From contig NIVC01000250.1 in the NCBI GenBank assembly GCA_002269645.1, forward strand, positions 1 to 64,000: 64,000 nucleotides of DNA, written 5' to 3'. The first letter of the stretch is position 1, and every line of letters starts with the position of its first letter. Origin of the DNA: Macrostomum lignano (taxonomy: Eukaryota). This document shows, piece by piece, positions 27,983 to 62,406 of the stretch. Below the pieces are notes generated by a model, which was not told the origin of the DNA, made no database searches, and was given only the letters and a program-made list of their open reading frames with translations. The position numbers were made by a program, and so were the translations under genes.

Positions 27983-28061
27983 CTGAAATGGTTTAAGTGA
28001 AAAACAACAATATACAAAAAGGAATGATGACTACACACAACACAATAATTTTATTACCAAC

Positions 28062-28166
28062 CTGAATAGCCAGGAAAATGGTGAGAAACACGGACGCGCT
28101 CAGAACCAGCAGAATAACAAAAATGCTGACAATTGCGTCTAGTGAACTGGTTAAAATGTCCGACAT
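28062..28166 (-). CDS. TMEM245: TMEM245 exon 5 (MSDILTSSLDAIVSIFVILLVLSASVFLTIFLAIQ)
   Basis: aacag|ATG acceptor, CAG|gttggt donor, 105 nt, phase 0/0. TM helix resembles TMEM245 D..VS.F.I.LL. Confidence 0.85.
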
Positions 28167-28176
28167 CTGTTAAAAT

Positions 28177-28255
28177 AAAAAAAATAGACAGTCAAGTAAT
28201 TGTCGATGGCCGGTTACCTGTGGAGCATAAGTTAATCCATCGACTCCGGACCGCC
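28177..28255 (-). ncRNA. Y RNA-like gene, copy A (intronic in TMEM245)
   Basis: GGCGGUCCGGAGUCGAUGGAUUAAC…GGCCAUCGACAAUUACUUGACUGUCUA-U8. GGCGGUC pairs with GACUGUC, and GUCGAUGG pairs with CCAUCGAC. TATA-like TAAATAAATAG about 30 nt upstream. Confidence 0.8.
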
Positions 28256-28459
28256 CCAGCCTAACACCTGGTAGCCTCACCCGCTATTTATTTAGCTCCA
28301 TACAGACCCGTCAACTGATGCAACCTTGTGAAATTCAACGATAAAAAGATATACAAATACGCTACTAATCTACTGATAGTAAAAACATGGGACTTTCAGC
28401 AATTATTAAAATATTTTTTATGATGGACCCTAACGAGCATAAAAACGTTACCCATATCT

Positions 28460-28880
28460 GTTAGACACAAATATTACCTGCTAGACAGGAATAATACGTG
28501 TTAGACAAGAAATATACCAGTTAGACAGGAAGTATACCTGTTAGACAGGAAGTTTACCTGTTAGACAGGAAGTATACCTGTTAGACAGGAAGTATACCTG
28601 TTAGACAGGAAGTATACCTGTTAGACAGGAAGTATACCTGCTAGACAGGAAGTATACCTGTTAGACAGGAAGTATACCTGCTAGACAGGAAGTATACCTG
28701 CTAGACAGGAAGTATACCTGTTAGACAGGAAGTATACCTGTTGGACAGGAAGTATACCTGTTAGACAGGAAGTATACCTGTTAGACAGGAAGTATACCTG
28801 CTAGACAGGAAGTATACCTGTTAGACAGGAAGTATACCTGCTAGACAGGAAGTATACCTGCTAGACAGGAATAATACTCT
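28460..28880. repeat. 20-bp repeat CTGTTAGACAGGAAGTATAC
   Basis: Direct reading. Confidence 0.95.
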
Positions 28881-28946
28881 ACATGCAAATCTTTACTTTA
28901 AGTAGTAAAACTAGCAAAAATGTAGTTTTATCAATCCAAACGCTAC

Positions 28947-29095
28947 CTTTCGATCGCCCCGCAGCAGCAGCTTGTAGATGCCCCTGACGGGGAACGGGGC
29001 CAGGGCTTCTCGACGGCTTTCAACTAGTTGCATCGCCTGGCTGTAGGCTGAGCTGGCCCAGCGCTTTGCCAGCTGGCTGCCTCCGATGCTGTCAC
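28947..29095 (-). CDS. TMEM245: TMEM245 exon 4 (…ESRREALAPFPVRGIYKLLLRGDRK)
   Basis: cttag|GT acceptor and AAG|gtagc donor. Phases fit the neighbouring exons; resembles the TMEM245 P.P..G...LL...D.K motif. Confidence 0.8.
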
Positions 29096-29139
29096 CTAAG
29101 GGGAGGGGCGGACCAGTGAACTGTCTTTGAGCTGTGAAA

Positions 29140-29392
29140 GTCTATCCTTGTAGAGGGTAGCAGTCTATCCTTGTAGAGGGTAGCAGTCTATCTATGGAGT
29201 AGAAGTCTATCACTCTATGGGGAAGAAGTCTATCACTCTATGGGGCAGAAGTCTGTCACTCTATGGGGCAGAAGTCTGTCACTCTATGGGGCAGAAGTCT
29301 GTCACTCTATGGGGCAGAAGTCTGTCACTCTATGGAGTAGAAGTCTGTCACTCTATGGAGTAGAAGTCTGTCACTCTATGGGGCAGAAGTCT
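29140..29392. repeat. 23-bp repeat GGGCAGAAGTCTGTCACTCTATG
   Basis: Direct reading. Confidence 0.9.
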
Positions 29393-29433
29393 CAGGCAGA
29401 AATCAAAAAACATTTTCAACTTATAAGTCGCAC

Positions 29434-30015
29434 CTAAAGTCCGCAGAGCCACAAAAGCGGCCACAAAGGGCAGCAGAGACAGGGTCCAGGGCCTTGTCCA
29501 CGCGTACACCAGCGCGTGGCCCCACAGCAGCAGCACAAAGAAAGTCTTGCTGCTCCGCGACTGCTGCTGCTGGCGCCGCTGTTTCTGTCGAATCAGTCGG
29601 TCGGCATTGACGCCGCAGCTCATGGATCGGGAGACTCGGCGCCTCGCCTGCGGCAGCGGCGGCGGCGGCTGCTGCTGCTGGCGAACTGCAGGCGTCGAAG
29701 TGCCACCCGAAGGTGACGCCGCGTCCACATTGTCGTCGTTGCCGCTCGAAACAATCGGCTGAAGATTCTCGTCGGCTATTGCCGTCTCCTCGGTGGAAAG
29801 CTGCTGCTGCTGCTGTTCTTGAGGAGTTTCGTCCGGTAGGTCGACGGGGTCATCGTCGGACTCCGACTCGCCCGTTGCCGCCGATGCCGCCACTGCTGCA
29901 GCGGTTGACGGCGAGTTGTTCGACCCGACCAGGCTCAGCAGGGAGGCGAAATCGTCTGCAGAGTTGAAGGTCAAGTGACGTGCAGTTCTCAGCGATGGAG
30001 GCTGTGAGCTGACAC
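29434..30015 (-). CDS. TMEM245: TMEM245 exon 3 (low-complexity loop, then FFVLLLWGHALVYAWTRPW TM segment); 5' boundary uncertain (30015 or 30024)
   Basis: Open frame with phase-1 acceptor ctcag|GT and donor TTA G|gtgcg. Length 582 fits phase 1 to phase 1. Confidence 0.7.
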
Positions 30016-30129
30016 CTGAGCAAGCTGGCACACGCTCGCACAGAGTGTACAGCGGCGATGACTGTCTCATTTCTGGCCCTCGTAAGGCCGGAGCGGCACG
30101 ACATGTACCTCCTCTGAAACTGCCTCTGT

Positions 30130-31042
30130 AAATGGCGCCCCCCTCTGTAGTTGGCGCCCCCTCTGTAGCTGGCGCCCTCTGAATCCGGCGCCCCCCTCTG
30201 TAGCTGGCGCCCTCTCTGTAGTTGGCGCCCCCCTCTGTATTTGGCGCCCCCTCTGTAACTGGCGCCCCCTGTAGTGGGCACCCCCTTTGTAGTTGGCGCC
30301 TCCTCTGTATCCGGCGACCCCTCTGTAGTTGGCGCCTCCTCTGTAGCTGGCGCCCCCCTCTATAGTTGGCGCCCCCTCTGTAGTTGGCGCCCCCCCTGAA
30401 TCCGGCGCCCCCCTCTGTAGTTGGTGCCCCCTCTGTATTTGGCGCCCCCTCTGTAGTTGGCGCCCCCTCTGTAGTTGGCACCCCCTCTGTAGTTGGCGCC
30501 CCCTCTGTAGTTGGCGCCCCCTTCTGTAGCTGGCGCCCCCTCTGTAGTTGGCGCCCCCCCTCTGTAGCTGGCGCCCCCCTCTGTAGCTGACGCCCCTGAA
30601 TCCGGCGCTCCTCTCTGTAGCTGGCGCCCCCCCTCTGTATTTGGCGCCCCCTCTGTAGTTGGCGCCTCCTCTGTAGCTGGCGCCCCCCTCTGTAGCTGGC
30701 GCCCCCCCCCTCTGTATTTGGCGCCCCCTCTGTAGTTGGCGCCTCCTCTGTAGTTGGCGCCTCCTCTGTAGCTGGCGCCCCCTCTGTAGCTGGCGCCCCC
30801 CTCTGTATTTGGCGCCCCCTCTGTAGTTGGCGCCTCCTCTGTAGCTGGCGCCCCCTCTGTAGTTGGTGCCTCCTCTGTAGCTGGCGCCCCCTCTGTAGTT
30901 GGCGCCCCCCCTCTGTAGTTGGCGCCCCCTCTGTAGCTGGCGCCCCCCTCTGTAGCTGGCGCCCCTCTATAGCTGGCGCCCCCTCTGTAGTTGGCGCCCC
31001 CCTCTGTAGCTGGCGCCCACCTGTATCCGGCGCCCCCCTGTA
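30130..31042. repeat. 17-20-bp repeat GGCGCCCCCTCTGTAGTT
   Basis: Direct reading. Confidence 0.95.
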
Positions 31043-31126
31043 TTTAGGGCTCCATTCTGACAATTCAAATGCATAAGATAGATAAGAAAGGATGAAGGAT
31101 ATAATGAATTTATAAGCTAAGCTCAC

Positions 31127-34233: not shown

Positions 34234-36498
34234 GAGGGGGTGAGCCAAAAGTTTCCGGAATTTTTTCTAATACTTTCAGTTAATTTTTGTCCATGGAAAA
34301 GCTTAAAAGCAGCAACCATCTACTATGCTGTTGACCAGCCGAATCATCACTTCTTTAGCTTAGCATTGCTCAGTTTCCCAGGGTCTGATTAAGCTAGCAA
34401 ACGCATTCAATGGAACTGCCAAAAACTGAATGAAGGGCGATCAATTCTGCTCAGCCACTTTCGTGCGGGACGCAATTATAAGCAGCCGAGGCACATCGCA
34501 AGTTGTTGCAGCTGATGGGCCCACATGCACCCTCCAAGTCATCGGTGTACGAGTGGTTCTCTCGCTTTGCTCAAGAGAACTATGAGCTGCAGGACAAGCC
34601 GAGGTCAGGCCGATCCCCTGCTGCTGATGGCGAGCCGTTCTCCAAGCCCTTGAGGACAATTATCCAGACTACAGCGTGCGCAAGTCAGCTGCTACTGGGG
34701 TGTCCTATGCCACGGTCCAGCGGAGCCTGCATGCTGCGGACAAGGTGCCGAAAAAGCCAACTCTTGGTGCCCCATGAGCTGACACCTTCAGCAGCTGAGA
34801 ACCAAGGGTGCATGTGGCGACTTTGAATCTTTGTCAGGCCAGTTCGACAAACTTTCTCAAGTCGATGATCGCTCAAGACGGAGCAGTGGGTCTGCTATAA
34901 GAACCCAAGCATGCACATCAGCCGTCTGGGTCGATGCTTCTGCAGAACCACCCAGCTGCCCAATGCGGAACCCCCACTGCGGCAAGGAGCTGCTCTCTCT
35001 CTGGTTCTGCTCGTCTGGCCCTGTTTTCTGGGAGGTCATCCCGCATGGCATGGCTGTGAACGCGGAGGTGATCTGCAGCGAACTGGAGGAGGTCGGCCGT
35101 TTGCTGCGATCCGTGTGCCCGGGGCACCGCGACAAGGTGCTCCTCCTTGACAATTCGCGGCCTCACAAAGCAAGCAAGACTCACCCAAGCCAAGTTGGCT
35201 AGCCTGGGCTTCAGTGTCTTGCCCCACCCACATACTCGCCGGACCTCTCGCCATGCGACTACCATGTTGAAGAGTTGATTCGGGAGGTGATCAGTCTCCC
35301 GAAAACTCCCACTTCCAGACACCTAAGCCTGGGAACAAAATTAACGTGTTCACTTACTGTGGCGGGCTCTTCTTCTGCGTCCGGCAGGTTCTCCGAGCTC
35401 GTTCCTTGGTTCTCCTTTGTTGCGCGCGTTTGTAGAGTTCGCTTCTTCCAATCTTCTTCTCCGGAGGAATCTTCTTGAAGTCTTCGAAGTCCAAAGTCGG
35501 CCGAGAGTGAGAGCAGAACAGTGAAGTCGACGTCGAAATATTTCCTCGAGTGCGGGATTCAGTACGTTTCTCGAGTGCCAAATCAGTATCAACAGTGCGC
35601 CCTAATAAACTCAAATTCTAACGCGAGGTCCTCCAAAGGGGGCGTCTTCTTCTAGATCTAACGGAATCGGAGTCGTGTGCTCCTATCTGTTAATCTAGGA
35701 CAATCCAAATCAACAATCAATAATCCTCTAAGGGTATCGGAATCGGTCCGCAGATCCTATCCAATCCCTTAGGAAAATGAGAGGCCTCAAATAGTCTCAG
35801 TAAAGTCAACGGATCAGCAACGGCCGGCCGGCAATAAAATCGCTCTCAATAATCAAAATAACGAAGACTTGAACAACGCTTCTCAATTGATACGCTTCTC
35901 TCCCAGAGATATAGCCTCGATTAGTTGCTCTAACTAACCACAAGATCTTTTGAGGCTGCTCCGAGTCTGAGGTTTCAGCTCGGATTTTACGCTTATATTT
36001 ATAGTCGAATTTTTGGTATATATTTAGTAGCGCGACTCATATTTCATCAGATTTTATCTTATTTCATCATATTTCACCATCGTTGCAACTTGTCTCATGC
36101 TTCGTTGTACGTTGTATTCACGGTCTTAAATTAGAGTATGACAGTTTGCAATTTTTATAACATTCAAGTTTTTCGCATTTTTATGTTACTACTTACAGTA
36201 GTTTACTTTGTATCGTATTTGGATATCTCTACAATGTGTTCAGGTCCCTCCAGAGCTTTATGATGGACAGCGGTTCGCCAACAAGCAACATGTGGAGCAG
36301 GAAGTGCAGAAATGGATAGATTCAAGGCCTGCGAACTTCTGGAGGGATCGAGGAGATCGAGGCATTGCCAGCAAGATGGGACAGGGTCAGGGCCTTGATT
36401 ATAGCAACTGCATCACATCGCTGTAAACTGTTTGTTCTCGAGAATATTTGTTACAGTTTTCAATTGTTCAAATTCGGGAAACTTTTGGCTCACCCTAT
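34234..36498 (+). mobile_element. Degenerate Tc1/mariner transposon (mariner-type), split by an LTR
   Basis: TIRs GGGTGAGCCAAAAGTTTCC(G/C)GAATT at about 34237-34262 and 36471-36495 with TA flanks. Frameshifted transposase pieces SVYEWFSRF…D.PRSGR, VPHELT, LLLDNSRPH, YSPDLSPCDYH and FRSLQ…WIDSRP..FW. Confidence 0.9.
35268..36233. mobile_element. Probable solo LTR (966 bp, TG…CA, 4-bp TSD ATGT)
   Basis: Starts TGAAGAG and ends CTCTACA. ATGT lies at 35264-35267 and 36234-36237. Removing the insert restores the mariner codons CAT GTG TTC AGG (H-V-F-R). Confidence 0.8.
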
Positions 36499-36542: not shown

Positions 36543-36637
36543 AAAAAAGTCGGTTGTCGAGTGTATGCCGATGGGGGTAAACCATGGAAGTCTAAATTGC
36601 TTTGAACGGAGTTTAACCTAATCGACTCCGGACCGCC
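36543..36637 (-). ncRNA. Y RNA-like gene, copy B (divergent, possibly degenerate 3' stem)
   Basis: GGCGGUCCGGAGUCGAUUAGGUUAAAC…CCCAUCGGCAUACACUCGACAACCGAC-U6. TATA-like CTTAAATAG at 36664-36672. Confidence 0.65.
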
Positions 36638-37042
36638 TTAGGTGAATTTTGGCGACTGAAATGCTATTTAAGCTTAAACAGGCTTTGATACAATAAAAAT
36701 AATTTTACTATTAAACTGCACGTCATGCTCCTATCATCTACTTTAAGTAGAAATACACATTTTTCATTGCAAATTATGCAGCAAACTTCAGAAAACTATA
36801 AAAACTATAAGTTAGCGAATGATTAATTCGATCTTGCATCTGATTTTCTAAAGGTCAACAATATTTTTTATCATTAATAGAAGAGTAATTACACTTGAAT
36901 TAATCACATGACATATTTTTGTACTTTTATCCAATATAAAGGAAAGACCAATTTTACTTTCACTAAAGAGAAAAATTTAGTTACTGTTGGCACATTATGT
37001 AGAAAGTGACAGAAATAATTAAAATTATTGAAAATTCTGCAT

Positions 37043-37122
37043 AAAAAATTCGGCTGTCAAGTGAGTGTCGATGGGTATAATTCGTTTGAGTAAGTTTGTT
37101 AACCCATCGACTCCGGACCGCC
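37043..37122 (-). ncRNA. Y RNA-like gene, copy C
   Basis: GGCGGUCCGGAGUCGAUGGGUUAACAAACUUACUCAAACGAAUUAUACCCAUCGACACUCACUUGACAGCCGAA-U6. Perfect 10-bp GUCGAUGGGU/ACCCAUCGAC stem. TATA-like box at 37146-37152. Confidence 0.85.
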
Positions 37123-37145
37123 TAGTTGAAATTGCGACTGAACAA

Positions 37146-37237
37146 CTATTTAACCTCTTCAATGCGCATCTCAATGCAATCCGGCAAATTTCTCTCGTAA
37201 ATAATTCACACATACGCTATTAATCTACTCTCAGTAG
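37146..37237 (-). promoter_or_regulatory. Representative external (type-3 Pol III-like) promoter of the Y-like genes: TATA-like TTAAATAG, ATTGCAT-like element, CTACT-N3-AGTAG palindrome
   Basis: The same ordered elements recur upstream of copies A, B, C, E, F, G, H and I while the spacers diverge. Copy D keeps only the proximal part. Confidence 0.7.
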
Positions 37238-37513
37238 AAATGATAAACTATGCCAAGCTAAAAAAATTAACTAAGGAAAGTTAAATTTACAATAGAAAAA
37301 TTTCTTTGAAAGCCTGCTGACTTTTATCTTTGATGAAAATTGTTAATATAAACGAATCTATCTACGAGCTAAATTTCTAATTCTTGGATCATCTAATGTT
37401 TTTGTCTGACTATTTTAACAAATAATCCTTGCAGCGGGCACTTTTTAAAATACTTCTTTTTTAAAGGCCAGAAATTAAACAAAAAATTTTGAAAACTGTT
37501 TAATTTAACCGGC

Positions 37514-37587
37514 AAAAAGCTGGTCAAGTGAGTGCCAATGGGGTATTTTGAGACCAATTCAGTTAACCCATCGACTCCGGACCAGCC
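37514..37587 (-). ncRNA. Y RNA-like gene, copy D (GGCUGGUCCG type)
   Basis: GGCUGGUCCGGAGUCGAUGGGUUAACUGAAUUGGUCUCAAAAUACCCCAUUGGCACUCACUUGACCAGC-U5. First 10 nt equal the vertebrate Y1/Y3/Y4 5' end as I recall it. TATA-like box at 37611-37619. Confidence 0.9.
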
Positions 37588-37676
37588 CAACAGTTGGGGT
37601 GTCCGACTGCCTATTTAAGCCTGAACAATGCTGCAAGCTAAGCCTAATTCTCTGCGCTGTATGCTTTTGTGGTGAA

Positions 37677-39011
37677 GACGGTCTCTGACTGTTTTTACCC
37701 TGGCTGCCTCTCTGGCGGCATTTCTCGGGTTGTGCGCAATCCAATCTCGGGTTGTGCGCAATCCAATCTCGGGTTGTGCGCAATCCAATCTCGGGTTGTG
37801 CGCAATCCAATCTCGGGTTGTGCGCAATCCAATCTCGGGTTGTGCGCAATCCAATCTCGGGTTGTGCGCAATCCAATCTCGGGTTGTGCGCAATCCAATC
37901 TCGGGTTGTGCGCTCTCGCTAGCCCAATTTTCTAAGGGTCCGCCCCGGGGGCTGTGCCTATTCTAAAATTACCCTATTGATTTCATTCCAATCAATTTGG
38001 CCCTCGGCCTTGGGTTAGGGGGTGTACCTGGAGTGAGTTGGAGATCTGGACTGCAGTGTGGCTAGAACGGGACTTGAGCCCCCCGGTCGCACCCGCCCTG
38101 CAGGAAAGACGACCATTCACAAAGGTGTACGGTAGAGCCCAGTCGATGCCAGCCCTGAGGCTGGCCCCGGGTTAGGGTTCAGGTGCTCCTCCCATTCTGC
38201 CATTTCTTTGTGTTTTTATCTGGGCTGGCATCCCAGTGTTTTTGTTCCTTTGTGTTTTACCCGGCCATTAGTTTGCCATTCCAATTCTTGGAGTTATGAG
38301 CTCTGCCCTACCTGCCCGGTCCATCTTTCTTGCCTGCCTTGGTCCATCTGCTGGCTCCTCTGGTTGTCTCCCTGCCTATTGTGTCTCGGCTCTCATCTCT
38401 GACAGTGGATTGGAGTCCTGGGTTGGATGTTCGTCCCGAATCGGGGAAAACCGGCTGAGTCCGGTTTCCTCTTGCCCCTTGTGCCCCTCAGCTCCGCCCC
38501 CTTGGCCTGGCCTCCAATATACATGTAGAGCTGGATAGGTGATACCCTTGTGGCTTGCAGCCCTGTAGGTAGTCGCTATATCCTGCCTGATAGGAGACTC
38601 GCCCTCGGAAACAAGCCTTCCAGACTCACTCCAATATTAAGCCATTTCCGAGACTTCGGGGTTTCCCCGCTCTCGGACCGCTTCTCAGTAGTAACCCAAG
38701 CATTTTTCATTCCAATTCTTTTTTGGCGCACTCCTGGGATTTGTCTGCTGGGTGGTGGCCTGGGTGGACTCGGTCCTTGCACGGTCCCATATGATTCCAC
38801 AAATATTGGGTTGGCGGTGTCTTAGTCCATAAGGCTTGGGTTAGTAGCTCCAATGCTCCATGCTCTCCCCAGAGTCCTGAGCTCTGGTTCCAATAGTGGC
38901 CTCTCGGGCTTAAAGCCCCTGGTAGTATAACCCACAGCAAGATCCATGCGGCAGATCGAGCCCCCTAGGGCTGATCCGCGGGCAGCGCTTCTCCTCCGTT
39001 TTAACAACAAC
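37677..39011. mobile_element. Unclassified dispersed repeat ending in TTTAACAACAAC; contains a 22-bp tandem array
   Basis: 38555-39010 is homologous to 44910-45317. Both copies encode related minus-strand peptides (MES.GTV.GPSPP.PP…RASLLSG). Confidence 0.55.
37724..37912. repeat. 22-bp repeat TCTCGGGTTGTGCGCAATCCAA (about 8.5 perfect copies)
   Basis: Direct reading. Confidence 0.96.
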
Positions 39012-39089
39012 AAAGAGAAAAATTTAGTTACTGTAGGCATATTATGTAGAAAGTGACAGAAATAATTAAAATTAATGAAAATTCTGCAT

Positions 39090-39170
39090 AAAAAATTCGG
39101 CTGTCAAGTGAGTGTCGATGGGGTATAATTCGTTTGAGTAAGTTTGTTAACCCATCGACTCCGGACCGCC
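39090..39170 (-). ncRNA. Y RNA-like gene, copy E (near-identical to C)
   Basis: Same sequence as C with one extra C in the 3' arm. Part of the 36965-37676 / 39012-39730 duplication. Confidence 0.85.
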
Positions 39171-39562
39171 TAGTTGAAATTGCGACTGAACAACTATTTA
39201 ACCTCTTCAATGCGCATCTCAATGCAATCCGGCAAATTTCTCTCGTAAATAATTCACACATACGCTATTAATCTACTCTCAGTAGAAATGATAAACTATG
39301 CCAAGCTAAAAAAATTAACTAATGAAAGTTAAATTTACAATAGAAAAATTTCTTTGAAAGCCTGCTGACTTTTATCTTTGATAAAAATTGTTAATATAAA
39401 CGAATCTATCTACGAGCTAAATTTCTAATTCTTGGATCATCTAATGTTTTTGTCTGACTATTTTAACAAATAATCCTTGCAGCGGGCACTTTTTAAAATA
39501 CTTCCTTTTCTAAAGGCCAGAAATTAAACAAAAAAAATTGAAAACTGTTTAATTTAACCGGC

Positions 39563-39636
39563 AAAAAGCTGGTCAAGTGAGTGCCAATGGGGTATTTTGA
39601 GACCAATTCAGTTAACCCATCGACTCCGGACCAGCC
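39563..39636 (-). ncRNA. Y RNA-like gene, copy F (identical to D)
   Basis: GGCUGGUCCGGAG…CACUUGACCAGC-U5 with TATA-like CTTAAATAG upstream. Confidence 0.9.
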
Positions 39637-40146
39637 CAACAGTTGGGGTGTCCGACTGCCTATTTAAGCCTGAACAATGCTGCATCGAAGTCTAAGCCTA
39701 ATTCTCTGTGCTGTATGCTTCTGTGGTGAAATTCATTGTGCAAACTCAATGAAATTAGAGTAGCACGCATTTCGTCTACTATAAGTAAAAAAATAAAAAT
39801 GTCACTTGAATTTTTTGCGTTGGTGCAATAAAATTCTTTATCTGATTCGCTCGTGATTCGCATTTGCAATTGTTCACTTACTGGTAAGTTTGGCACTTGT
39901 TATAAATTGTTTGCTTTCTGTTTTCTGACTAACCAGCATACCGTAACCGCAGGTTTTACTGCTCGTACTACGCTCGTATTAATAAGCTGCGTATTAATAA
40001 GGGGCCACTGCAAGCGGTACCAATAAGTATTTAAACATTTACTTACAATTTTATGCTTCCGGCACTAATAATTAATTATACGAATCGTAAATATTATTAC
40101 TGATACATGTACGATTAAATGAAATAAAGTACGATTAATAGTTCAT

Positions 40147-40325
40147 TAATACCCATGCTTTAAGGGCGTTAATGGGAAAATCAGAGGGTGCCTCTGAACC
40201 GCCGCCGCCGCCGCCGCCGCCGCCACCTCCGCTGACAAGCGATCAGAACGAATTTGACAACGCTAGACAGCCTGCAAACGGCGCCCTCTGATTTTCCTAT
40301 TAACGCCCTTAAAGCAAGGGTATTA
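40147..40325. mobile_element. Small MITE-like inverted repeat (about 46-bp arms around a GCC run)
   Basis: TAATACCCATGCTTTAAGGGCGTTAATGGGAAAATCAGAGGG is mirrored at 40280-40325 with few mismatches. Confidence 0.65.
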
Positions 40326-40669
40326 CTATTATTGCGCCATAGACATTTGTGTCCTTGACAAAGTGGGACAGAATAATCGGGCGTTAAATGTCATTAACTG
40401 CCCACTAATTTGCATTATAGTAAGTTTGACATAGACAATCGGGCGTTAAATGTCATTGTACCATGACCTTTGTGCCCGCTGGGCACTTATTCTTGCCTTT
40501 TAATGCCATAGACTACATTTAAGCCCGCTTGCAGGAGTCAAACTTACTTTAATGCAAATTAGCGGGCAGTTAATGTACTATTAACTGCCCACTAATTTCG
40601 ATATTTCTTTCCTGCAAGCGGGAGTAGCAGACGAGACCGAGACGCTGCCGGGGATGCAATCTTGCTTAC

Positions 40670-40862
40670 CCGCTGCCAGCAGTTTTTGTACCTCGGCGGC
40701 CTCGTGCCGGACGTCGCCGACTATCTGGTGAGACGACGCGGGGACTGGCCTGGGCCGCGTTTCGTTCTGTGCGCTCCGTGCTCCATTCTGAAGCCCTGGA
40801 TGATGGGCTCAGGGCACGGCTGTTTCAGGCAGTCGTTGAGACTGTCTTGTTGTACAACGCCA
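40670..40862 (+). mobile_element. RTE-like LINE reverse-transcriptase fragment
   Basis: QQFLYLGG…RRRG..AWAAF…RARLFQAVVETVLLYNA resembles the F.YLG…R…AW.AF…LF…V..VLLY region of non-LTR RTs. Frameshifted. Confidence 0.65.
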
Positions 40863-40877
40863 AGACCAACCCTAATA

Positions 40878-41192
40878 CGTACAGTATTAGAATTTGTAGT
40901 AAATTTGCACTTTTTTCTACTCAGTGGCGATAACTGCATGTTTTATACGAGTTAGTAGTATGGGTTTTAGCATAGTGCACTAGCTCTACAGACAGGCTTT
41001 GATGTAATAAAAATAATCTTACCACTAAAATGCACACGTCATGCTCCTATCATCTACTTCAAGTAGAAATAAACATTTTTCATTCCATAGTGCACTATGC
41101 TAAAACCCATACTACTAACTCGTATAAAACATGCAGTTATCGCCACTGAGTAGAAAAAAGTGCAAATTTACTACAAATTCTAATACTGTACG
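40878..41192. repeat. 105-bp perfect inverted repeat enclosing a 105-bp copy of the copy-G upstream promoter
   Basis: 40878-40982 is the reverse complement of 41088-41192. The core 40983-41087 matches 41391-41495. Confidence 0.88.
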
Positions 41193-41253
41193 CACATCTA
41201 CATGTACGTAGAAGACAGTGACCAGGATTTAAAATTAATGAAGATTCTGCATT

Positions 41254-41356
41254 AAAAATTTGGCAGTCAAGTTAGTGCCGATGGCCGTATTTCATGCCTA
41301 TCTATCTATCTATCTATCATGAGTAAGTTTTGTTAAGCCATCGACTCCGGACCGCC
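41254..41356 (-). ncRNA. Y RNA-like gene, copy G (GAUA repeat in loop)
   Basis: GGCGGUCCGGAGUCGAUGGCUUAAC…GGCCAUCGGCACUAACUUGACUGCCAAA-U5. GGCGGUC/GACUGCC lower stem is fully paired. TATA-like box at 41383-41391. Confidence 0.82.
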
Positions 41357-42775
41357 TTGCTTGAGCTTTGGCGTCTGAACTGCTATTTAAGCTCTACAGA
41401 CAGGCTTTGATGCAATGAAAAGAATCTTACCACTAAAATGCACACATCATGCTCCTATCATCTACTTCAAGTAGAAATACACATTTTTCATTCCAGATTT
41501 CGCAGAAAAACTACATTTAGAAACTATACTTGGCGTCTGAATAATTCTGATCAGATGCAATCTGAAATTTATAAAAGTGATGTAACCACGTCTTGGTCGC
41601 GGGATGAATTGGGGAAATTTTTCGAAATGTCCCCGATCCCCTTTGACCGAATGGGCAGAGCTGTCGAGACTGGGCCGGGTCTCCCTGAACTCCCGCTCTG
41701 ATTGCGACCCCTGCTGTCTCTGTTCCGTCTCCCACGCAGCCACACTTGCCTTTCTGGAGCCCCCCTTTTTTGTGCACCTCGCCTGCTCCCGCATTTCTCA
41801 TGCGCCTCAGACCATTTATCATGTATTTCTCGTGTTTTTCCCGTCTTTTTATCATGTTCTTGCACGGTTTTCTTGCGCTGTCCCCTCCTCGTCCCGTGCC
41901 TACTTAGAATATCGCTTGTGCAGATCGTCACCCCATCTCCCTTTAGGATCCCAAATGGTGACGCAAGGCTCCTGACCCCTCCCTCACCCCGATGACTCAT
42001 CACCCACCTCTTGCGCAACCTTTCTCATGCTATTGATCACTTCCCAAGATTTCTCATGTGACAGCCTCCCCTCCTCCGCTTCCATTTTTCTTGTTTTTGA
42101 TTTTTTTGTTCTTCTTTTCGCACCTAATTAGCACCTTTTTTCTCAATGTTTGCTTTTCCATTTTTCTCGATTCTCCCCAATTATCCTCGATTTCCATTTC
42201 CTTTATTCTCGATCTGATTCCCATTGTTCTCAATGTTGCTTGCGCAACACTTCTTCGACCTCCCGCTGGGCTTATTTTCCCATCAATCCCCGTCCGGATT
42301 GCGCATGTTTCCCATTTCTCATGTTGCTATGCCGTTCTTATATTTCTCATAATGACTCATTCTGACGTCATCTTCCCGGCGGCCAATCAGAGTAAGGGAG
42401 TCATGGAAACGACCTTGGAGTATTTAGAGGACTATTTAAGGAAGTGATTTCGGCGTGACAACCTGCAAAGTTTTGGCCTTTGGTCTTCTGCAAGACCTTC
42501 GCCCAGCTTGGCTTCTCGTTCTATCTTTGGACTTGCCGTCGTCAGACGCCGGTCTGAACCCCCCCCATTCGTCTATAGGACGAACCTCTGCCAGCCCGCG
42601 GTCTGATACCGCCTAGATTCCTCAGCTCCCCAAGCGAGCTTATCTACCGGCCCGCGGTCCGATACCGCCCAGCATCCTCAGCATCGCCTGAGCTACATCA
42701 GTGCCTCGTCGCTTCAGCGCATCGCCGCTTCACTACCTGCCTGTCCGCAGCCAACAGCCGCCCTCGGTCACTCCA

Positions 42776-43001
<226 letters not shown>

Positions 43002-44160
43002 CAGCTGCCGTTGAGTTCCTGTACTGATTTTTGCTCTAATTGCCTTTGCTTATCCGGGGTCGGCTTATTTCCCATTGCTTGATTAGAGAGCTGAGCCAAT
43101 TATGTACCTTGCTGTATTTTACTCACTAGTGAAGCCGCCTAATTGCCTGTTAATTTCGCCTAAGGGCCTAATTATAAACAATTACTAAAACAACTCATTT
43201 TTCACACCTTCACCATCATTTCACCCATGGCTTGCTGAGCCTTTCTCCCTGGGTGGCAAAGCATAAGGAAGTTTGGGTAAGCTAATGGCATCTCCCCGTG
43301 CAAAGCCCGCCTGTGTGTGCGTGCTGCGGGTCCGTGTGTGCGTGCAGTAGAGGTAATTAGCGTGTCTTGGCACAGAATGGCAGCAGGAAGGTTGCAACAC
43401 CCTGCTCACGCGTCCCTTCGCCCTGAGCAATCTAAACTATAGCTGGTACATGTTCATCTCGCACTACTCTTAATAATTGAAGCCGCAAGTCCGCCTCGCT
43501 CACAGCCTCAAAGGATCTCCTGCTGAGAAATCCTCCAGATTGATCCCAGAGTTCCCGAGTATGCCCCAAGCAGAGTCCCTGTACTCGGCTGCATGTGTCT
43601 CCCCTGTTAGCCTAAACCCCCTGGTAACCAATCCAGGCGGGGCTCTAGCCTCGAAAGGTCTGGTCGTAAGATCCAGGTGCGCCAGTTCACATAGAGTGGT
43701 GGCAGCCATTCGGTCATGCCATGACCGAGTGACCAACTATTGCACCTTGGCTACAGGTGGGGTCCATGTGGGTCCTTGGCCCTCTGGTCACAAAGCGCTA
43801 CCAAAGCTATCAATCATGTGGGCGGGACAGTCTGGTGCTGGAGGTCCGTCAGGTCATTGCCCGGTCATAGGCAGCCTACGGTCATTGCCCCCTATGGTCA
43901 TACGCCCCCCTTCCCGTGGAGCAGACGGTCATCAAGGGCAGTTACATCAAAAGGCCAACATCATATTTTATTTCTCATAAACTGCTTCATAATTATTACA
44001 GTAAATAATTCTACTGTAACAATTCCACTATAAAGCATAAACTAATTTTACTTTCACTAAAATGAAACAATGCAAATTTAAGTTACTAAAAATCTTTATT
44101 AATGTTAGACAAATTATGTAAACAGTGATAGCAATTTTAAGCTCAATGAAAATTCTGAAT

Positions 44161-44251
44161 AAAAATTTCGGCTGTCAATTTCAAGTGTCGATGGGATGGA
44201 ATTCATGGCTGTGTAAGCTCGTTATAGCTAACCCTTCGACTCCGGACCGCC
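44161..44251 (-). ncRNA. Y RNA-like gene, copy H (shortened promoter spacing)
   Basis: GGCGGUCCGGAGUCGAAGGGUUAGC…UCCCAUCGACACUUGAAAUUGACAGCCGAAA-U5. TATA remnant only about 13 nt upstream. Confidence 0.7.
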
Positions 44252-44568
44252 GAACTGCAACTGCTGTTTAAACTCCTCAATGCGCAGCTCATGCAATCCG
44301 GCCAATTTCTCCAATAAATAATTCTACACATACGCTATTAATTTACTTACAGTAGAAAATGGCAAACTATGCGTAGAACATTTTGAAAGAATGTAACATT
44401 GAAAAAATTAACTAAAAATTGTTTGAAAATCTGCTGGTCAGTGTTGGACTTTTGATCTTGTCAAGGATCAAGTAGTCCTTGTCATTCACCTATTCATGTA
44501 CATTTACATGTTGAATTCTCGTTTCCTAAAGCCCAGAAATATTTGAAAACTTTTGGATTAAAGCCAGC

Positions 44569-44643
44569 AAAAAAGCTGGTCAAGTGAGTGCCAATGGGGT
44601 ATTTTGAGAGCAATTCAGTTAACCCATCGACTCCGGACCAGCC
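44569..44643 (-). ncRNA. Y RNA-like gene, copy I (GGCUGGUCCG type; 1 loop substitution vs D)
   Basis: GGCUGGUCCGGAGUCGAUGGGUUAACUGAAUUGCUCUCAAAAUACCCCAUUGGCACUCACUUGACCAGC-U6. TATA-like box at about 44667-44675. Confidence 0.9.
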
Positions 44644-44843
44644 CGGCAGTTGGGGTGTCCGACTGCCTATTTAAGCCTGAACAATGCTGCAAGCTAAGCC
44701 TAGCTAATTCGCTGCGCTGTACGCTTTTGTGGCGAAATTCATCGTGCGGATTCTATATAAAATTGGAGTAGCGCACATTTCGTCTACTTTAAGTAGGAAA
44801 ATAGAAATGTCGATTGGATTTTTTTCGTTTGTGCAATAAAATT

Positions 44844-51207: not shown

Positions 51208-53355
51208 ATCTCCAAGATAATTGACAAGCGCAAGAAGCAAGGCCGAGTTGAATACAGGATCCGCTGGACTGGTTTCAAATCCAGTCAGGACACCTGGGAG
51301 CCGGCCACAGAGATCATGCCTGTTGCTTACCGATTGGTCAGAGATTTTCATAACCGATCAAAGAATTCAAATAATTCGGCTTCGAATGCCAGTTCACCGA
51401 GCTCTTCAAAGGAGCAGCAACCAATTGACCAGGGCTCTCCGAAAAAGCAGCAGACTCAGCCGAGGCTGCCGAAGCTCATGGCCCTGAAACAGCTGCAGCA
51501 GTCGCAGCCCGAACCGCCGCAGGCTCAGAAATTGCCGCAGAAGCAGCAGACAGCTGCTAAACTGATGCGAAAGAAAGGCGGCAAACAGCAACCGCAACGG
51601 GCTCGCGTGCTGGCTTTGCCAAAGAGAAAAGCCAAGAAAAGGCTGCAGAAATTGCAGCCAAAGCAGCAGAAGCAGCAAGCCAAGAAAAATAACCAGCAAA
51701 AATCTGCAGATGACGCTTCAACAGTTTCTGCTTCTAATCCGTCTTCAGCCGCGTCTGCATCCTCTTCTTCGTCGTCTGCTTCGTCCGCCGCATCGTCCGC
51801 TGCTTCTTCAACCGTATCGCCTAATTCGCAGCCTTCGCAGCCGCCTCAGCCGTTGCCACCGTCGCATCAGTCGCAGTCGCCGCCGCTGCCAATTCCGTCT
51901 CAGATGCAGCAGCAGCAGTCAGAGCTAGCGGCTCTGCCATCAGCATCTATTGATTGGAATTTGAAATACGGATTAGAAGGCGGCAGCGCTCCGGTCACGC
52001 CTCGACACTTGTCTCCTTCGTCTCCTTCGACAGCTCCTGTAGCTTTGATTGCATCCGCTGTCGATTCTCCTTCGGCTCTGCTAGCTCCGGCCTCGTCTCC
52101 GCCTCTGGCGCCTTCGCCGCGGCCTGAACAACAGCAGCAGCAGCAGCAACAGTCGCAGCCTTCGCTGCCGCAGACGCCGACATCGTCGTCTAGCGATCTT
52201 CGCCGCTACCACGCCGGAGTTATCGACGCTATTGATAGCATCCGTCGGTTGAAGCGCAAGGTACTACTAGATCGAGTAGTGCAAGCAGTGTGCAAGAAGC
52301 TCCGAGTCGGTGCTGGACTAGCGGAAGCGGTCATCGAGGATATGGTTAGAATTGGCCGCTTAAAAAAGGTCCGCTGTTCAACTGACAACTCGCTGACTCT
52401 GTACTTGCCTAATCAGAAGCCGCGCTCAGTTGCTGTGTCCACTGTGTCAGCCAAAGCTAAACCGAAGTCCCAGCAGCAGCAGCAGCTGCAAGCAAAGAAA
52501 ACAACTCATATTCGCAACAATTATCATGAGTTATTTGTTAAACAGCCGGCCCACAGTCCGGGTGTGTTTGAAATCTGGCTAGTTGGGCCCAGCAATGGCA
52601 CTGGACAGCCTGGCTGCTGCTTCACAGTCCGTCTGATGCAGGAGCTGTGCCGGGCGCTGCAGCAGGCGCTAAACAATCCAGCTTGCAGGCTGGTCCGTCT
52701 GGCTAACACAGATCCCCGCTGCTTTAGTAGGGGAGTCGATCTCAGCTCAATGCTAGCAGCCAAGCCCGGTCAGGAGGCTTCTCTAGCTGTCAATCAGCTC
52801 ACTGACGAATTGCAACGCTTAGTGTCGGCTATGGTTGAATTTCCCAAGTTATTGGTTGCCACGGTTACAGGAGCTTGCGTAGGCTTAGGCGCGGCCCTGC
52901 TGCCGCTGTGCGATTTTGTCTACGCTAGCGATAGCGCCTATTTTTATTTGCCCTACGCCAAGCTCAAGCAGCCGTGCGAGGCTGGCGTGTCCTACACTCT
53001 GCGACAGGCGTTGGGCAAGCCGACCGCCTCTGAGATGCTGCTTGCCGGACGGAAGCTCACAGCTAACGAGGCGTGCACTCGGGGCCTGGTGTCTAGCGTG
53101 ATCTTTGCTGACACATTTCAACAGGAAGCCGCCGTCCGTTGCGCCAGCATCGGCGCCAGCGTCGGTGCCGAGAATGTGCGCCAGACTAAAGCGCTGATGC
53201 ATTCGACTAGCAGGTCGTCTGTTATCCAGGCCTGCCAGGCCGAGTGCCTGGCCTTGCGCTCCTATTGGCTGAGAGATGACGCCAGGCAGCTGATGCGCGA
53301 ATTTCTTGGCGAAGATCGCGACTTGCTAGAGCGCGCGGAGGCGTCGGTCTTGTGA
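51208..53355 (+). CDS. CDYL: CDYL-like protein: chromodomain + winged-helix-like segment + crotonase/enoyl-CoA hydratase-like domain (large exon; upstream exon not identified)
   Basis: From acceptor cacag|ATC the frame reads ISKIIDKRKKQGRVEYRIRWTGFKSSQDTWEP (chromodomain) and runs into ORF 51316-53355. The C-terminus has FSRGVDL…FPKLLVATVTGACVGLGAALLPLCDFVYASDSAYF…ASEMLLAGRKLTANEA..GLV (crotonase fold). Chromo + crotonase is the CDY family architecture. Confidence 0.88.
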   Translation: MSKIIDKRKKQGRVEYRIRWTGFKSSQDTWEPATEIMPVAYRLVRDFHNRSKNSNNSASNASSPSSSKEQQPIDQGSPKKQQTQPRLPKLMALKQLQQSQPEPPQAQKLPQKQQTAAKLMRKKGGKQQPQRARVLALPKRKAKKRLQKLQPKQQKQQAKKNNQQKSADDASTVSASNPSSAASASSSSSSASSAASSAASSTVSPNSQPSQPPQPLPPSHQSQSPPLPIPSQMQQQQSELAALPSASIDWNLKYGLEGGSAPVTPRHLSPSSPSTAPVALIASAVDSPSALLAPASSPPLAPSPRPEQQQQQQQQSQPSLPQTPTSSSSDLRRYHAGVIDAIDSIRRLKRKVLLDRVVQAVCKKLRVGAGLAEAVIEDMVRIGRLKKVRCSTDNSLTLYLPNQKPRSVAVSTVSAKAKPKSQQQQQLQAKKTTHIRNNYHELFVKQPAHSPGVFEIWLVGPSNGTGQPGCCFTVRLMQELCRALQQALNNPACRLVRLANTDPRCFSRGVDLSSMLAAKPGQEASLAVNQLTDELQRLVSAMVEFPKLLVATVTGACVGLGAALLPLCDFVYASDSAYFYLPYAKLKQPCEAGVSYTLRQALGKPTASEMLLAGRKLTANEACTRGLVSSVIFADTFQQEAAVRCASIGASVGAENVRQTKALMHSTSRSSVIQACQAECLALRSYWLRDDARQLMREFLGEDRDLLERAEASVL

Positions 53356-60332: not shown

Positions 60333-62406
60333 TTCTGCCTTTGACAATGTCCTTTTTCGCTCCTTCAGAAACTCTCTTTCCCGCAGGAATGTGAGACACA
60401 GCATTGTTCGCTGGATTTATTTTATGATCCGCAATAGGTTTGCGACATCTACGCTTATGGGCGTTACCTACACCCGAGCGGTGATGAAAGGCGGCCCGCA
60501 AGGTGGCGTGCTAACTCCACTTCTTTGGAATCTCGTCATGGACGAACTTCTAACCGCAGACATTCCCAGCAGTATCACCAGGGCGGGCTACGCTGATGAC
60601 GTTGCCGCGGTCGTCAGCGGACCTGACCCCGCCACTCTGCGCAACCTGATGCAACAATTCGCCGACAAGGCGGCTGACTGGGCCACGCAACATGGCCTAA
60701 AAATCAGCGTCACGAAGACTGTCGCTGTCGTTTTCACCAAGCGCCGTGCGTGGGAGATGAAAAACCTCACTGTCTATGGCAGAAACATCCCCTTCAAGAA
60801 GGAGGTCAAATACCTCGGTGTGACGCTAACGCATGACCTGCGCTGGACGAAGCACCTTGATAACGTCATCGGTCGGGCAAAACGCTGCTTTGCCCAGCTG
60901 CGCAGAGCCATCGGGCCGACTTGGGGCCTCTCGCCTAGAACGGTCCGTTGGATTTATACCGGCATCATCCGGCCCAGTATCACATACGCGAGTCTCATCT
61001 GGACTAGCGTGCTGGAGCAGAAGACCGCCCGTCAGCGCCTACACCAGCTGCAGGGCAGCATTTGTCGTGCCATCACAGGTGCGTACCCGTCTACCCCTTA
61101 CGAGGGGCTGAACACTATCCTTAATCTCCCTCCGCTTCACCTATTTATTAGGGCGGAGGCTATGAAGTCCGCCTCCCGACTTATCAGAGATAAAACGTTA
61201 AATAACGTACCCTCTGGCTTTATGCCTATGAAAACCTTAATCCCGCATATGGACTTTGTCCGCCGCGACCTCAACAACATCCACATGGACCTGGGCAATG
61301 TGGACAGTCGACTCCCCGCCCTCAACATCAGGAGGGGCTTCCAGACCGCCATCCCTGGCCGAGACAGCATTCCGCTGGATGTCGGCGTGAACCGGCGCAG
61401 CCAGGGCATTCACTGCTTCACCGACGGCTCGCTGTTCAACGGCCGCGCTGGAGCGGGTATTGCCATTTTCCACGAGGGTAAGATGCTTCTCCAGGAAGGT
61501 CTGCACCTCGGTGAGAACACCTCAGTTTTCCAAGCTGAAATTTGCGCCATTGAGCAGTGTGCCCAGAAACTGCTTCAGGCGAACATTAATAACTCTAATA
61601 TTAATTTCTACACTGATAGCCAAGCTGCTATTAAGGCCTTAACCACTGAGAATATCTCCGCTGCTACAGTATCTCAATGCCACCGCAGTGTGCAATCTCT
61701 CTCAGTCCTTAACAGGATTAGAATTATCTGGACACCCGGTCACAGCAACATCCTGGGCAACGAGCTCGCGGACTCTCTCGCCAAGGAGGGCAGCAACCCA
61801 GACGGCAAGCACCGTCTGATGAGGCTACCCACTCCAAGGTCGCAAGTCACCCGCCATATCCACAGGTGGCTCCATCAGCAGCACCAGCTCCACTGGAACA
61901 GCTGCACCGAGTACAGGCAGAGCCGCTCTGCCATGCCTAACCTGAACAGGAAAGTCTCTGATTACCTGATTTCGCTTAACAGAACCGACCTCAGGGAGAT
62001 GTGCATGGTCCTAACCGGCCATGGTTTCTTCCAGAGACATATCTCGTTGCAAACCGGTTGCCCTCCCACCTGTCCCTTCTGTGGCATAGGAGAGGAGACC
62101 GCGGAGCATCACGTCACCTTCTGCCCTTACTTCAACAAGGCGCGGCACAAATACATCGGCCACCCCCAGCGGATGGACGAGCTGACCACCCCGGACAATA
62201 TCCGTGACCTTCGCGCCTTCGTCCGTGACTCCGGCCGGATGAGGGTCGCTGATGTCTCCACTGTGAACCTGCCGACTACTGGCGGGGACCGGGTGCACCC
62301 CCAAGGTTAATCCTTGTGCTCTTTTACGTTGGGGTTGCGATAGGGGCCTCGCGGCCTATTCGCGGCGCCTGCGCCCCCCGTCAGTAGTAAGTAAGTAAGT
62401 AAGTAA
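60333..62406 (+). mobile_element. 5'-truncated non-LTR retrotransposon with RT, RNase H and CCHC motif (LOA/R1/I-like group), antisense in a CENPJ intron
   Basis: Uninterrupted frame SAFDNV…[14 protein letters not shown]…GYADD…KYLGV…CFTDGS…SVFQAEI…FYTDSQAA…WTPGHS.I.GNE.AD…CPFCG…ETAEH…CP. (TAAG)n tail at about 62385-62406. Candidate TSD AACCCCA. Confidence 0.95.

Follow-up and report, generated by a model that had tools for sequence, protein, structure and literature searches.

Introduction

Vertebrate Y RNA genes lie in intergenic clusters. Mirtrons and tailed mirtrons are structured small-RNA precursors with an end at a splice site or a few nucleotides from it. The MIR SINE in an intron of mouse Polr3e is a Pol III-bound element that lies antisense to its host and acts on elongation as a roadblock, without splice-signal overlap, and such a Pol III unit inside a Pol II gene can reportedly interfere with Pol II. 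Ro60 is said to bind Y-like motifs within Pol II transcripts (Alu).

The features that define sbRNAs and Y RNAs, as given in Kowalski et al. 2015 (PMC4450293), are a lower stem, a bulged C, an upper stem with a UG-CA motif and an oligo-U end, and the loop motif described there is UUA(U/C)C. Two C. elegans studies (PMC2527325, PMC1474057) describe sbRNA loci that carry a motif of their own upstream and end in an oligo-T run, and report that small-RNA loci in introns, where they bear upstream motifs, do not depend on their hosts for expression; one of them (PMC1474057) proposes that transcription of host and guest can interfere with each other. Intronic, independently promoted small-RNA genes are already well known in C. 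elegans. In flatworms, a 2009 homology survey did not find Y RNAs in Schistosoma (PMC2770079), and our literature search found no publication linking Macrostomum with Y RNAs.

Here we describe a Y/sbRNA-like gene copy of Macrostomum lignano (copy A), located within the 64-kb stretch of DNA that was analysed (the window), whose 3' end abuts a splice acceptor of a TMEM245-like gene.

A Y/sbRNA-like gene family in the window

Rfam searches at gathering thresholds returned six matches to RF01656, the family of nematode sbRNAs, which are recognised homologs of Y RNAs; these matches lie at 37050-44645 on the minus strand and do not include copy A. A covariance model derived from copies in the window found nine members, without exception on the minus strand; eight are clustered at 36544-44649 and the ninth is copy A at 28262-28179. 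The eight-gene cluster adjoins exon 1 of the TMEM245-like gene on its upstream side and lies on the same strand. A mariner-type transposase fragment (34831-35202, plus strand) is found between the cluster and this exon.

The RNAalifold consensus of seven copies contains 18 pairs, three of them with compensatory changes. All seven aligned copies, including copy A, start the loop with UUAAC, which has one mismatch to the published motif, and the paralogs carry terminator runs of T5-T6 at the aligned position. Judged from sequence and predicted structure, this is clearly a structurally intact Y RNA/sbRNA-like family in a free-living flatworm. Its newness lies at the level of the phylum, and the family's range is thereby extended to flatworms.

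The vertebrate Y_RNA model (RF00019) was tried as a direct classifier and rejected, since it gave only sub-threshold matches and only in one subtype: three window copies, all of the GGCUGGUCC subtype, matched weakly (27 bits, E 0.04), and none of the window copies reached the gathering score of 38.

Two subtypes, GGCGGUCC and GGCUGGUCC, are distinguished in the cluster (36544-44649). The GGCGGUCC subtype has a PSE-like block upstream, while the GGCUGGUCC subtype has another conserved upstream region together with the weak RF00019 matches. Segments 37044-37593 and 39091-39642 form a tandem duplication of ~2.05 kb, each with one gene of each subtype. The copy at 41254-41363 (minus strand) carries a (GATA)n microsatellite in its loop, which brings it to ~100 nt, and both of its stems are intact.

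Identity and predicted fold of copy A

Copy A (28179-28262, minus strand) is supported by Rfam, a leave-one-out family model, the minimum free energy (MFE) fold and the consensus pairs. At relaxed thresholds, in a 1.2-kb search, RF01656 matched positions 28258-28185 with 30.4 bits (E 6e-4), below the gathering score of 38, and RF00019 gave no match at E<=10. The leave-one-out model, made from six other window copies, scored copy A at 60.5 bits (E ~1e-13 over 64 kb), higher than the cluster copies at 36544-36644 and 44162-44258 (~38 bits each).

In isolation, copy A folds with an MFE of -23.3 kcal/mol into the canonical stems of the family, and its ends are paired in both the MFE and the centroid structures. 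The lower stem has 8 bp (28256-28249 with 28193-28186), three of them G-U pairs, and is followed by an unpaired, bulged C at 28248 and by two further pairs (28247-28246 with 28196-28195). The upper stem, GUCGAUGG/CCAUCGAC, also has 8 bp (28244-28237 with 28209-28202) and closes the loop that starts with UUAAC (28236-28210). Of the upper stem usual in the family, about 9 bp with UG-CA at its centre (A/GUG-CAC/U), eight of the nine pairs are formed and the top pair is broken (A-G); this is the sole loss among the consensus pairs, 17 of 18 being kept. The 3' internal loop, CAAUUAC, is unlike that of all paralogs (CACUCAC/CACUAAC). The single deviation of copy A from the features given in PMC4450293 is in the loop motif, where UUAAC, which the aligned copies have in common, replaces UUA(U/C)C. 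Model scores and predicted fold together indicate that copy A is a genuine Y/sbRNA-like gene copy, a likeness beyond chance.

These features allow a comparison with the nematode sbRNAs (RF01656, ceN72-3_ceN74-2; C. elegans CeN72/CeN74). Both have paired ends with a single bulged C in the lower stem (GGUC-C-GG / ..UUGAC) and an oligo-U end; in both, the upper stem is one of 9 bp that contains UG-CA, and the loop opens with UUA-C. They differ in that the host here is a flatworm, that the loop start is UUAAC here and UUA(U/C)C there, and that copy A is sub-gathering in RF01656. Vertebrate Y RNAs (RF00019) share the GGCUGGUCCG...ACUUGAC(C/U)AG lower stem with its bulged C, which is the vertebrate Ro60 site, as well as the oligo-U tail (La site), the clustering of paralogs and, here putatively, Pol III genes with external promoters; unlike them, the window copies stay below RF00019 gathering, and Ro60 binding is only putative here.

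Upstream region and origin of copy A

Three promoter-like blocks precede copy A on the minus strand. The PSE-like block TTTTTACTATCAGTAGATTAGTAGCGTATTTGT (28353-28385) is shared with the GGCGGUCC-subtype copies, being identical at 27 of 33 positions to those of the copies ending at 37125, 39173 and 44258, whereas the adjacent spacers are only 33-46% identical. Between this block and the TATA-like box is a TTGCAT block (28318-28323, alignment columns 101-106), conserved across all six aligned upstream regions, one of which reads TTGTAT. The TATA-like box CTAAATAAATAG (28284-28295; TTAAATAG in the paralogs), placed by the alignment of the upstream regions, lies ~28 nt before the lower stem, and the spacing from this box to the stem is 23-28 nt across all copies. 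In copy A the box contains a 4-nt duplication, and 6 nt are inserted upstream of it. A scan of 28000-28500 for bacterial-type promoters and terminators gave nothing relevant.

Compared with the paralogs, copy A is identical at 24 of 25 positions in the 5' arm and at 19-20 of 24 in the 3' arm, but only at ~15-25% in the loop. The conservation of blocks and stems against diverged spacers and loop suggests purifying selection on the promoter and the stems. Homology with the paralogs starts ~115-135 nt upstream of copy A and stops at the T run; since it spans the promoter blocks and ends at this run, it points to a duplicate of promoter-plus-gene DNA. From these alignments, copy A is best described as an old, constrained DNA-level paralog.

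Three other origins were considered and rejected. A retro-copy or retro-pseudogene of a Y RNA does not fit, because the promoter-like blocks are within the homology and the copy ends in a T run with no A tail. A SINE or tRNA-derived element does not fit either, as there are no tRNA genes in the window and the promoter-like blocks are external rather than internal. The acceptor CAG could have been homologous to the ..GCAGAAT.. that follows the paralog terminators; the downstream flanks, however, do not align convincingly past the T run.

The Y unit would be a self-contained element of ~220 bp, with PSE-like block, TTGCAT, TATA-like box, stem-loop and oligo-T terminator. Its layout resembles that of nematode sbRNA genes and of other external-promoter (type-3-like) Pol III genes. 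Nematode sbRNA genes are likewise multicopy and carry their own upstream promoter, with an A/T-rich box nearest the gene, which the promoter-like blocks here resemble in layout; some of the nematode genes are intronic and independently expressed. In sequence, the upstream blocks of M. lignano (AGTAGATTAATAGCGTATG, TTGCAT, TTAAATAG) differ from the nematode UM3. From this layout we infer that copy A is most likely transcribed independently by Pol III.

It is also conceivable, though unlikely, that Pol III transcription of copy A has ceased and that the copy persists only as intron sequence, a dead relic whose T run and 3' arm have been co-opted as ordinary splice signals. Among the well-formed copies it has the lowest score (30.4 bits, sub-gathering in Rfam), and it shows three G-U pairs, one broken pair, an altered internal loop and indels in and beside the TATA-like box, at a distance of 8 kb from the cluster. 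These indels also count against our preferred reading, as copy A could be recently dead. However, conserved promoter and stem blocks next to saturated spacers and loop are unlike neutral decay, and the leave-one-out model ranks copy A above the copies at 36544-36644 and 44162-44258.

The TMEM245-like host gene

A tblastn search with relatives from the protein database placed exons of the host gene on the minus strand at 33334-~32810, ~31340-31150, ~29545-29421, ~29103-28947, 28166-28062, 27982-27905 and ~27481-27401. The C-terminal exons (18187-18026, 15502-15137 and 12571-12356) match Pfam AI-2E_transport (E 2e-6) and are 56% identical to a Limulus 'transmembrane protein 245-like', which justifies the TMEM245 label. 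Searches of the protein database revealed no M. lignano TMEM245 protein, neither the read-through ORF of exon 5 nor the ORF of exon 1 gave a match in exact look-ups, and a metagenome scan with the exon-1 peptide was also negative. The numbering of intron 4 and exon 5 follows our homology-based exon model.

Exon 4 (28947-29103, minus strand, 5' boundary approximate), ending in ...LVESRREALAPFPVRGIYKLLLRGDRK, was located by reading and by tblastn with the relatives P0001, P0004 and P0002. It closes on a full codon (…GDRK, AAG at 28949-28947) and is followed by GTAGCG. From sequence reading together with repeat and alignment data, intron 4 spans 780 nt (28167-28946, minus strand). In the direction of the gene it consists of the donor AAG|GTAGCG, 75 nt of unique sequence, a minisatellite (28871-28454; 418 nt, 20-nt unit), ~55 nt of AT-rich sequence, the Y unit (28398-28177, ~220 nt) and ATTTTAACAG. 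The first-pass annotation had placed a sense-oriented Y-like element in this intron, and both the family models and direct reading agree.

The minisatellite holds ~21 copies of the 20-nt unit GTATACTTCCTGTCTAACAG (28454-28871, sense strand). With GT at its beginning and AACAG at its end, every unit looks like a mini-intron. The unit is also similar to the 3' end of the Y gene together with the acceptor (TACTTgaCTGTCTA...AACAG), a likeness that may be due to chance or to derivation.

Exon 5 (28062-28166, minus strand) comprises 105 nt, or 35 codons, in phase 0/0 and encodes MSDILTSSLDAIVSIFVILLVLSASVFLTIFLAIQ, with one hydrophobic helix. It starts at the ATG at 28166, after TTTTATTTTAACAG, and ends with …AIQ at 28062, followed by GTTGGT, whose GT (28061-28060) is the donor. 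An acceptor farther upstream in this frame is excluded by a TAA that lies in frame 6 nt before 28166. The distance from PVRG to the Q|V junction is 50 residues both here and in the Pediculus protein (P0002), and the orthologous exon of contig L001 (11370-11474) also has 105 nt and the same phases, at 37% identity. The boundaries, length and phase originally proposed for exon 5 were thus upheld by reading, tblastn homology and the L001 exon.

Overlap of copy A with the exon 5 acceptor

The acceptor AG of exon 5 lies at 28167-28168 (minus strand), in the context TTTTATTTTAACAG|ATG, as read directly and with a boundary supported by orthologs. Upstream of it is the T8 run (28177-28184, minus strand; alignment columns 104-112), which occupies the terminator position of copy A and is the main block of the pyrimidine tract. 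Only ATTTTAAC is found between T8 and the AG, so that the 3' end of copy A is about 9-10 nt from the acceptor, and the Y gene occupies positions -11 to -95 relative to exon 5. T8 supplies eight of the 12 T's of the tract. As the first-pass annotation had noted, the run therefore sits ~10 nt before the AG and makes up most of the tract. It is the longest terminator run of the family, and the 64 kb contain three runs of at least eight T's on this strand. The abutment of a small-RNA gene to an acceptor is unusually tight.

The last AG before the acceptor, at 28219-28218, lies within the Y loop, leaving an AG-free zone at 28217-28169. Under the scanning picture of 3' splice-site choice, known from mammalian and yeast splicing and carried over here to a flatworm, the branch point is expected in the end of the Y loop or in the 3' arm, so that the branch point of the exon 5 acceptor likely falls inside the Y gene. 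A distal branch point upstream of the Y unit was considered unlikely, given the many AG dinucleotides between there and the acceptor. Together with the position of T8 in the tract, the AG-free zone within the Y gene makes it a sound structural inference, already drawn in the first-pass annotation, that the same bases would serve both roles.

The choice of a particular branch point is another matter. In TTGAC (28191-28195, minus strand), a candidate taken from the motif list and the fold pairing, the A is 28192, at 25 nt from the final base of the intron; this is the only yUnAy match with an A between -11 and -61. However, a yUnAy with its A at -18 to -40 turns up in 34% of 60-nt windows taken arbitrarily from this strand, and in 46% when a composition model is used, so the match is no better than chance and identifies nothing alone. 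The earlier proposal of CTTGAC as the branch site is thus correct in the position and distance of the A, but its choice of A28192 does not stand out from this chance rate.

In the loop of copy A, the sequence CACAG|GTAACC (28222-28211, minus strand) resembles two splice sites at once, a 3' one that follows UUAUGCUCCACAG and a 5' one (CAG|GUAAC). No other AG lies between the one in this sequence and the real acceptor.

In the isolated fold, A28192 is paired in the Y lower stem, the Ro-binding stem of vertebrate Y RNAs, and folding would therefore mask this candidate branch point. Folded within 221 nt of pre-mRNA, the region gains no stability over shuffled sequences (z = +0.6), and the upper stem alone survives in the centroid, from which the Y lower stem is absent. 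The idea that the Y stem closes over its own branch point hence agrees with the isolated copy and fails to find agreement in the pre-mRNA context.

These observations bear on a functional overlap, in which Y folding, Ro60/La or the Pol III machinery would mask the branch point and the tract and so tune the inclusion of exon 5. The pairing of the candidate A28192 in the lower stem fits such a role, as do a T8 that is the longest T run of the family and rare in the window, the 0/0 phase of exon 5, conserved promoter blocks that would plausibly bring Pol III factors onto the intron, and the reported precedents of MIR in mouse Polr3e and of Ro60 on Y-like motifs in Alu. The length of T8 relative to the paralog terminators could hint at selection for a dual role rather than mere tolerance. 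Nevertheless, on skipping, a conserved AI-2E-type transporter would lose one TM helix and have its topology scrambled, L001 keeps the size of the exon, the Y fold is not favoured in the pre-mRNA context, the yUnAy match is at chance level and the case is a single locus. We regard regulation of this kind as very unlikely. Least probable of all would be an active Pol III Y gene that acts as a splicing gate, its Pol III factors or its Y fold with Ro60 hiding the only usable branch point and pyrimidine tract of exon 5.

The loss of one TM helix on skipping and the 105-nt size kept in a distant relative favour a constitutive exon, and exon 5 is most likely spliced constitutively.

The short distance to the acceptor is also what an intron-derived RNA would show. 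By this route the excised intron would be debranched and trimmed by exonucleases down to a protein-protected stem, comparable to an intronic snoRNA or a tailed mirtron, and the 10-nt spacing would be explained. The sense orientation and an RNA 3' end 9-10 nt from the intron end are in keeping with it, and one C. elegans study reports that promoter-less intronic ncRNAs track host expression (PMC1474057). Yet such a route has no need of the promoter-like blocks and terminator that copy A has kept, a branch point in the 3' arm would put the lariat branch inside the RNA, and ~690 nt would have to be trimmed at the 5' side, through the minisatellite. This origin is highly improbable, slightly more so than regulation of exon 5 through the overlap.

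Comparison with other intronic small-RNA systems

Copy A resembles the C. elegans UM1-UM3 intronic loci in having its own upstream motif and in lying in sense orientation in the intron of a protein-coding gene (PMC1474057). Unlike here, that literature deals with expression correlation and not with bases shared by branch point, pyrimidine tract and terminator, and among the passages on sbRNAs that were searched, none gave a ~10-nt spacing between an sbRNA end and an acceptor. The MIR of Polr3e is like copy A a Pol III-type element in a Pol II gene, and differs in its antisense orientation and in having no splice-signal overlap. Mirtrons are promoterless and dependent on splicing, whereas copy A has promoter-like blocks and a terminator.

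TMEM245 orthologs in related contigs

TMEM245 orthologs were found in two AT-rich eukaryote contigs from metagenome/Logan assemblies, L001 (10001-12115) and L005 (4001-5480). The introns of these orthologs are very short (54-62 nt). The L001 intron at the identical position to intron 4 has 58 nt, compared with 780 nt in M. lignano, and the L005 intron before the homologous exon has 54 nt. Searches with the Y model gave no match in the L001 and L005 contigs or in the Pediculus locus, and a metagenome scan with a gapped DNA pattern of the Y family was also negative. Short introns lacking the Y unit in the relatives, against 780 nt here, suggest that the unit is a lineage-specific addition.

In the simplest history, duplication would have placed the unit in a probably short intron, with only the final ~10 nt (ATTTTAACAG) left between it and exon 5. 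The previous branch point would have been displaced and replaced by one within the insert, the Y 3' arm and terminator now providing the branch-point region of exon 5 and the greater part of its pyrimidine tract.

Other features of the window

The window has ~45% GC and is unusually rich in minisatellites. Two of them, at 29191-29392 (23-nt unit) and 30123-31042 (18-nt unit), lie in or beside the linker region of the TMEM245-like gene, and the 18-nt array keeps a 592-aa ORF open (29348-31126). An inositol polyphosphate kinase gene (Pfam IPK, ~26188-24350, minus strand) is contained in a ~7-kb intron of the TMEM245-like gene, on the same strand, flanked by the exons at ~27400 and ~19970.

On the plus strand, an ORF at 51316-53355 encodes a chromodomain and an enoyl-CoA hydratase domain (CDYL-like) and is 100% identical to the M. 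lignano entry BOX15_Mlig028982g1 of NCBI, whose record belongs to assembly GCA_002269645.1, scaffold NIVC01000118.1. A retroelement ORF with reverse transcriptase and RNase H is found at 60391-62310 (plus strand).

Discussion

The explanation that we consider probable is that copy A is a diverged but intact Y/sbRNA paralog that landed in an intron of the TMEM245-like gene, with its own Pol III transcription, an overlap that is tolerated and an exon 5 that is constitutive. The overlap would be a tolerated structural consequence of the landing place. It counts against this explanation that a random insertion landing at most 10 nt from an acceptor is somewhat improbable. Still, the landing place of the duplicated unit explains the overlap adequately, and we see the locus as a single-locus curiosity.

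Copy A is a naturally occurring example of a Pol III-type gene whose 3' arm and terminator would double as splice signals of a Pol II exon. Were the splicing gate true, the activity of the Y gene would set the balance between the full-length transporter and an in-frame isoform without one TM helix. The model M. lignano lends itself to RNAi and transgenesis, and, if copy A is active, the locus would offer a compact test bed for the interplay of Pol III with Pol II and of RNA folding with splicing.
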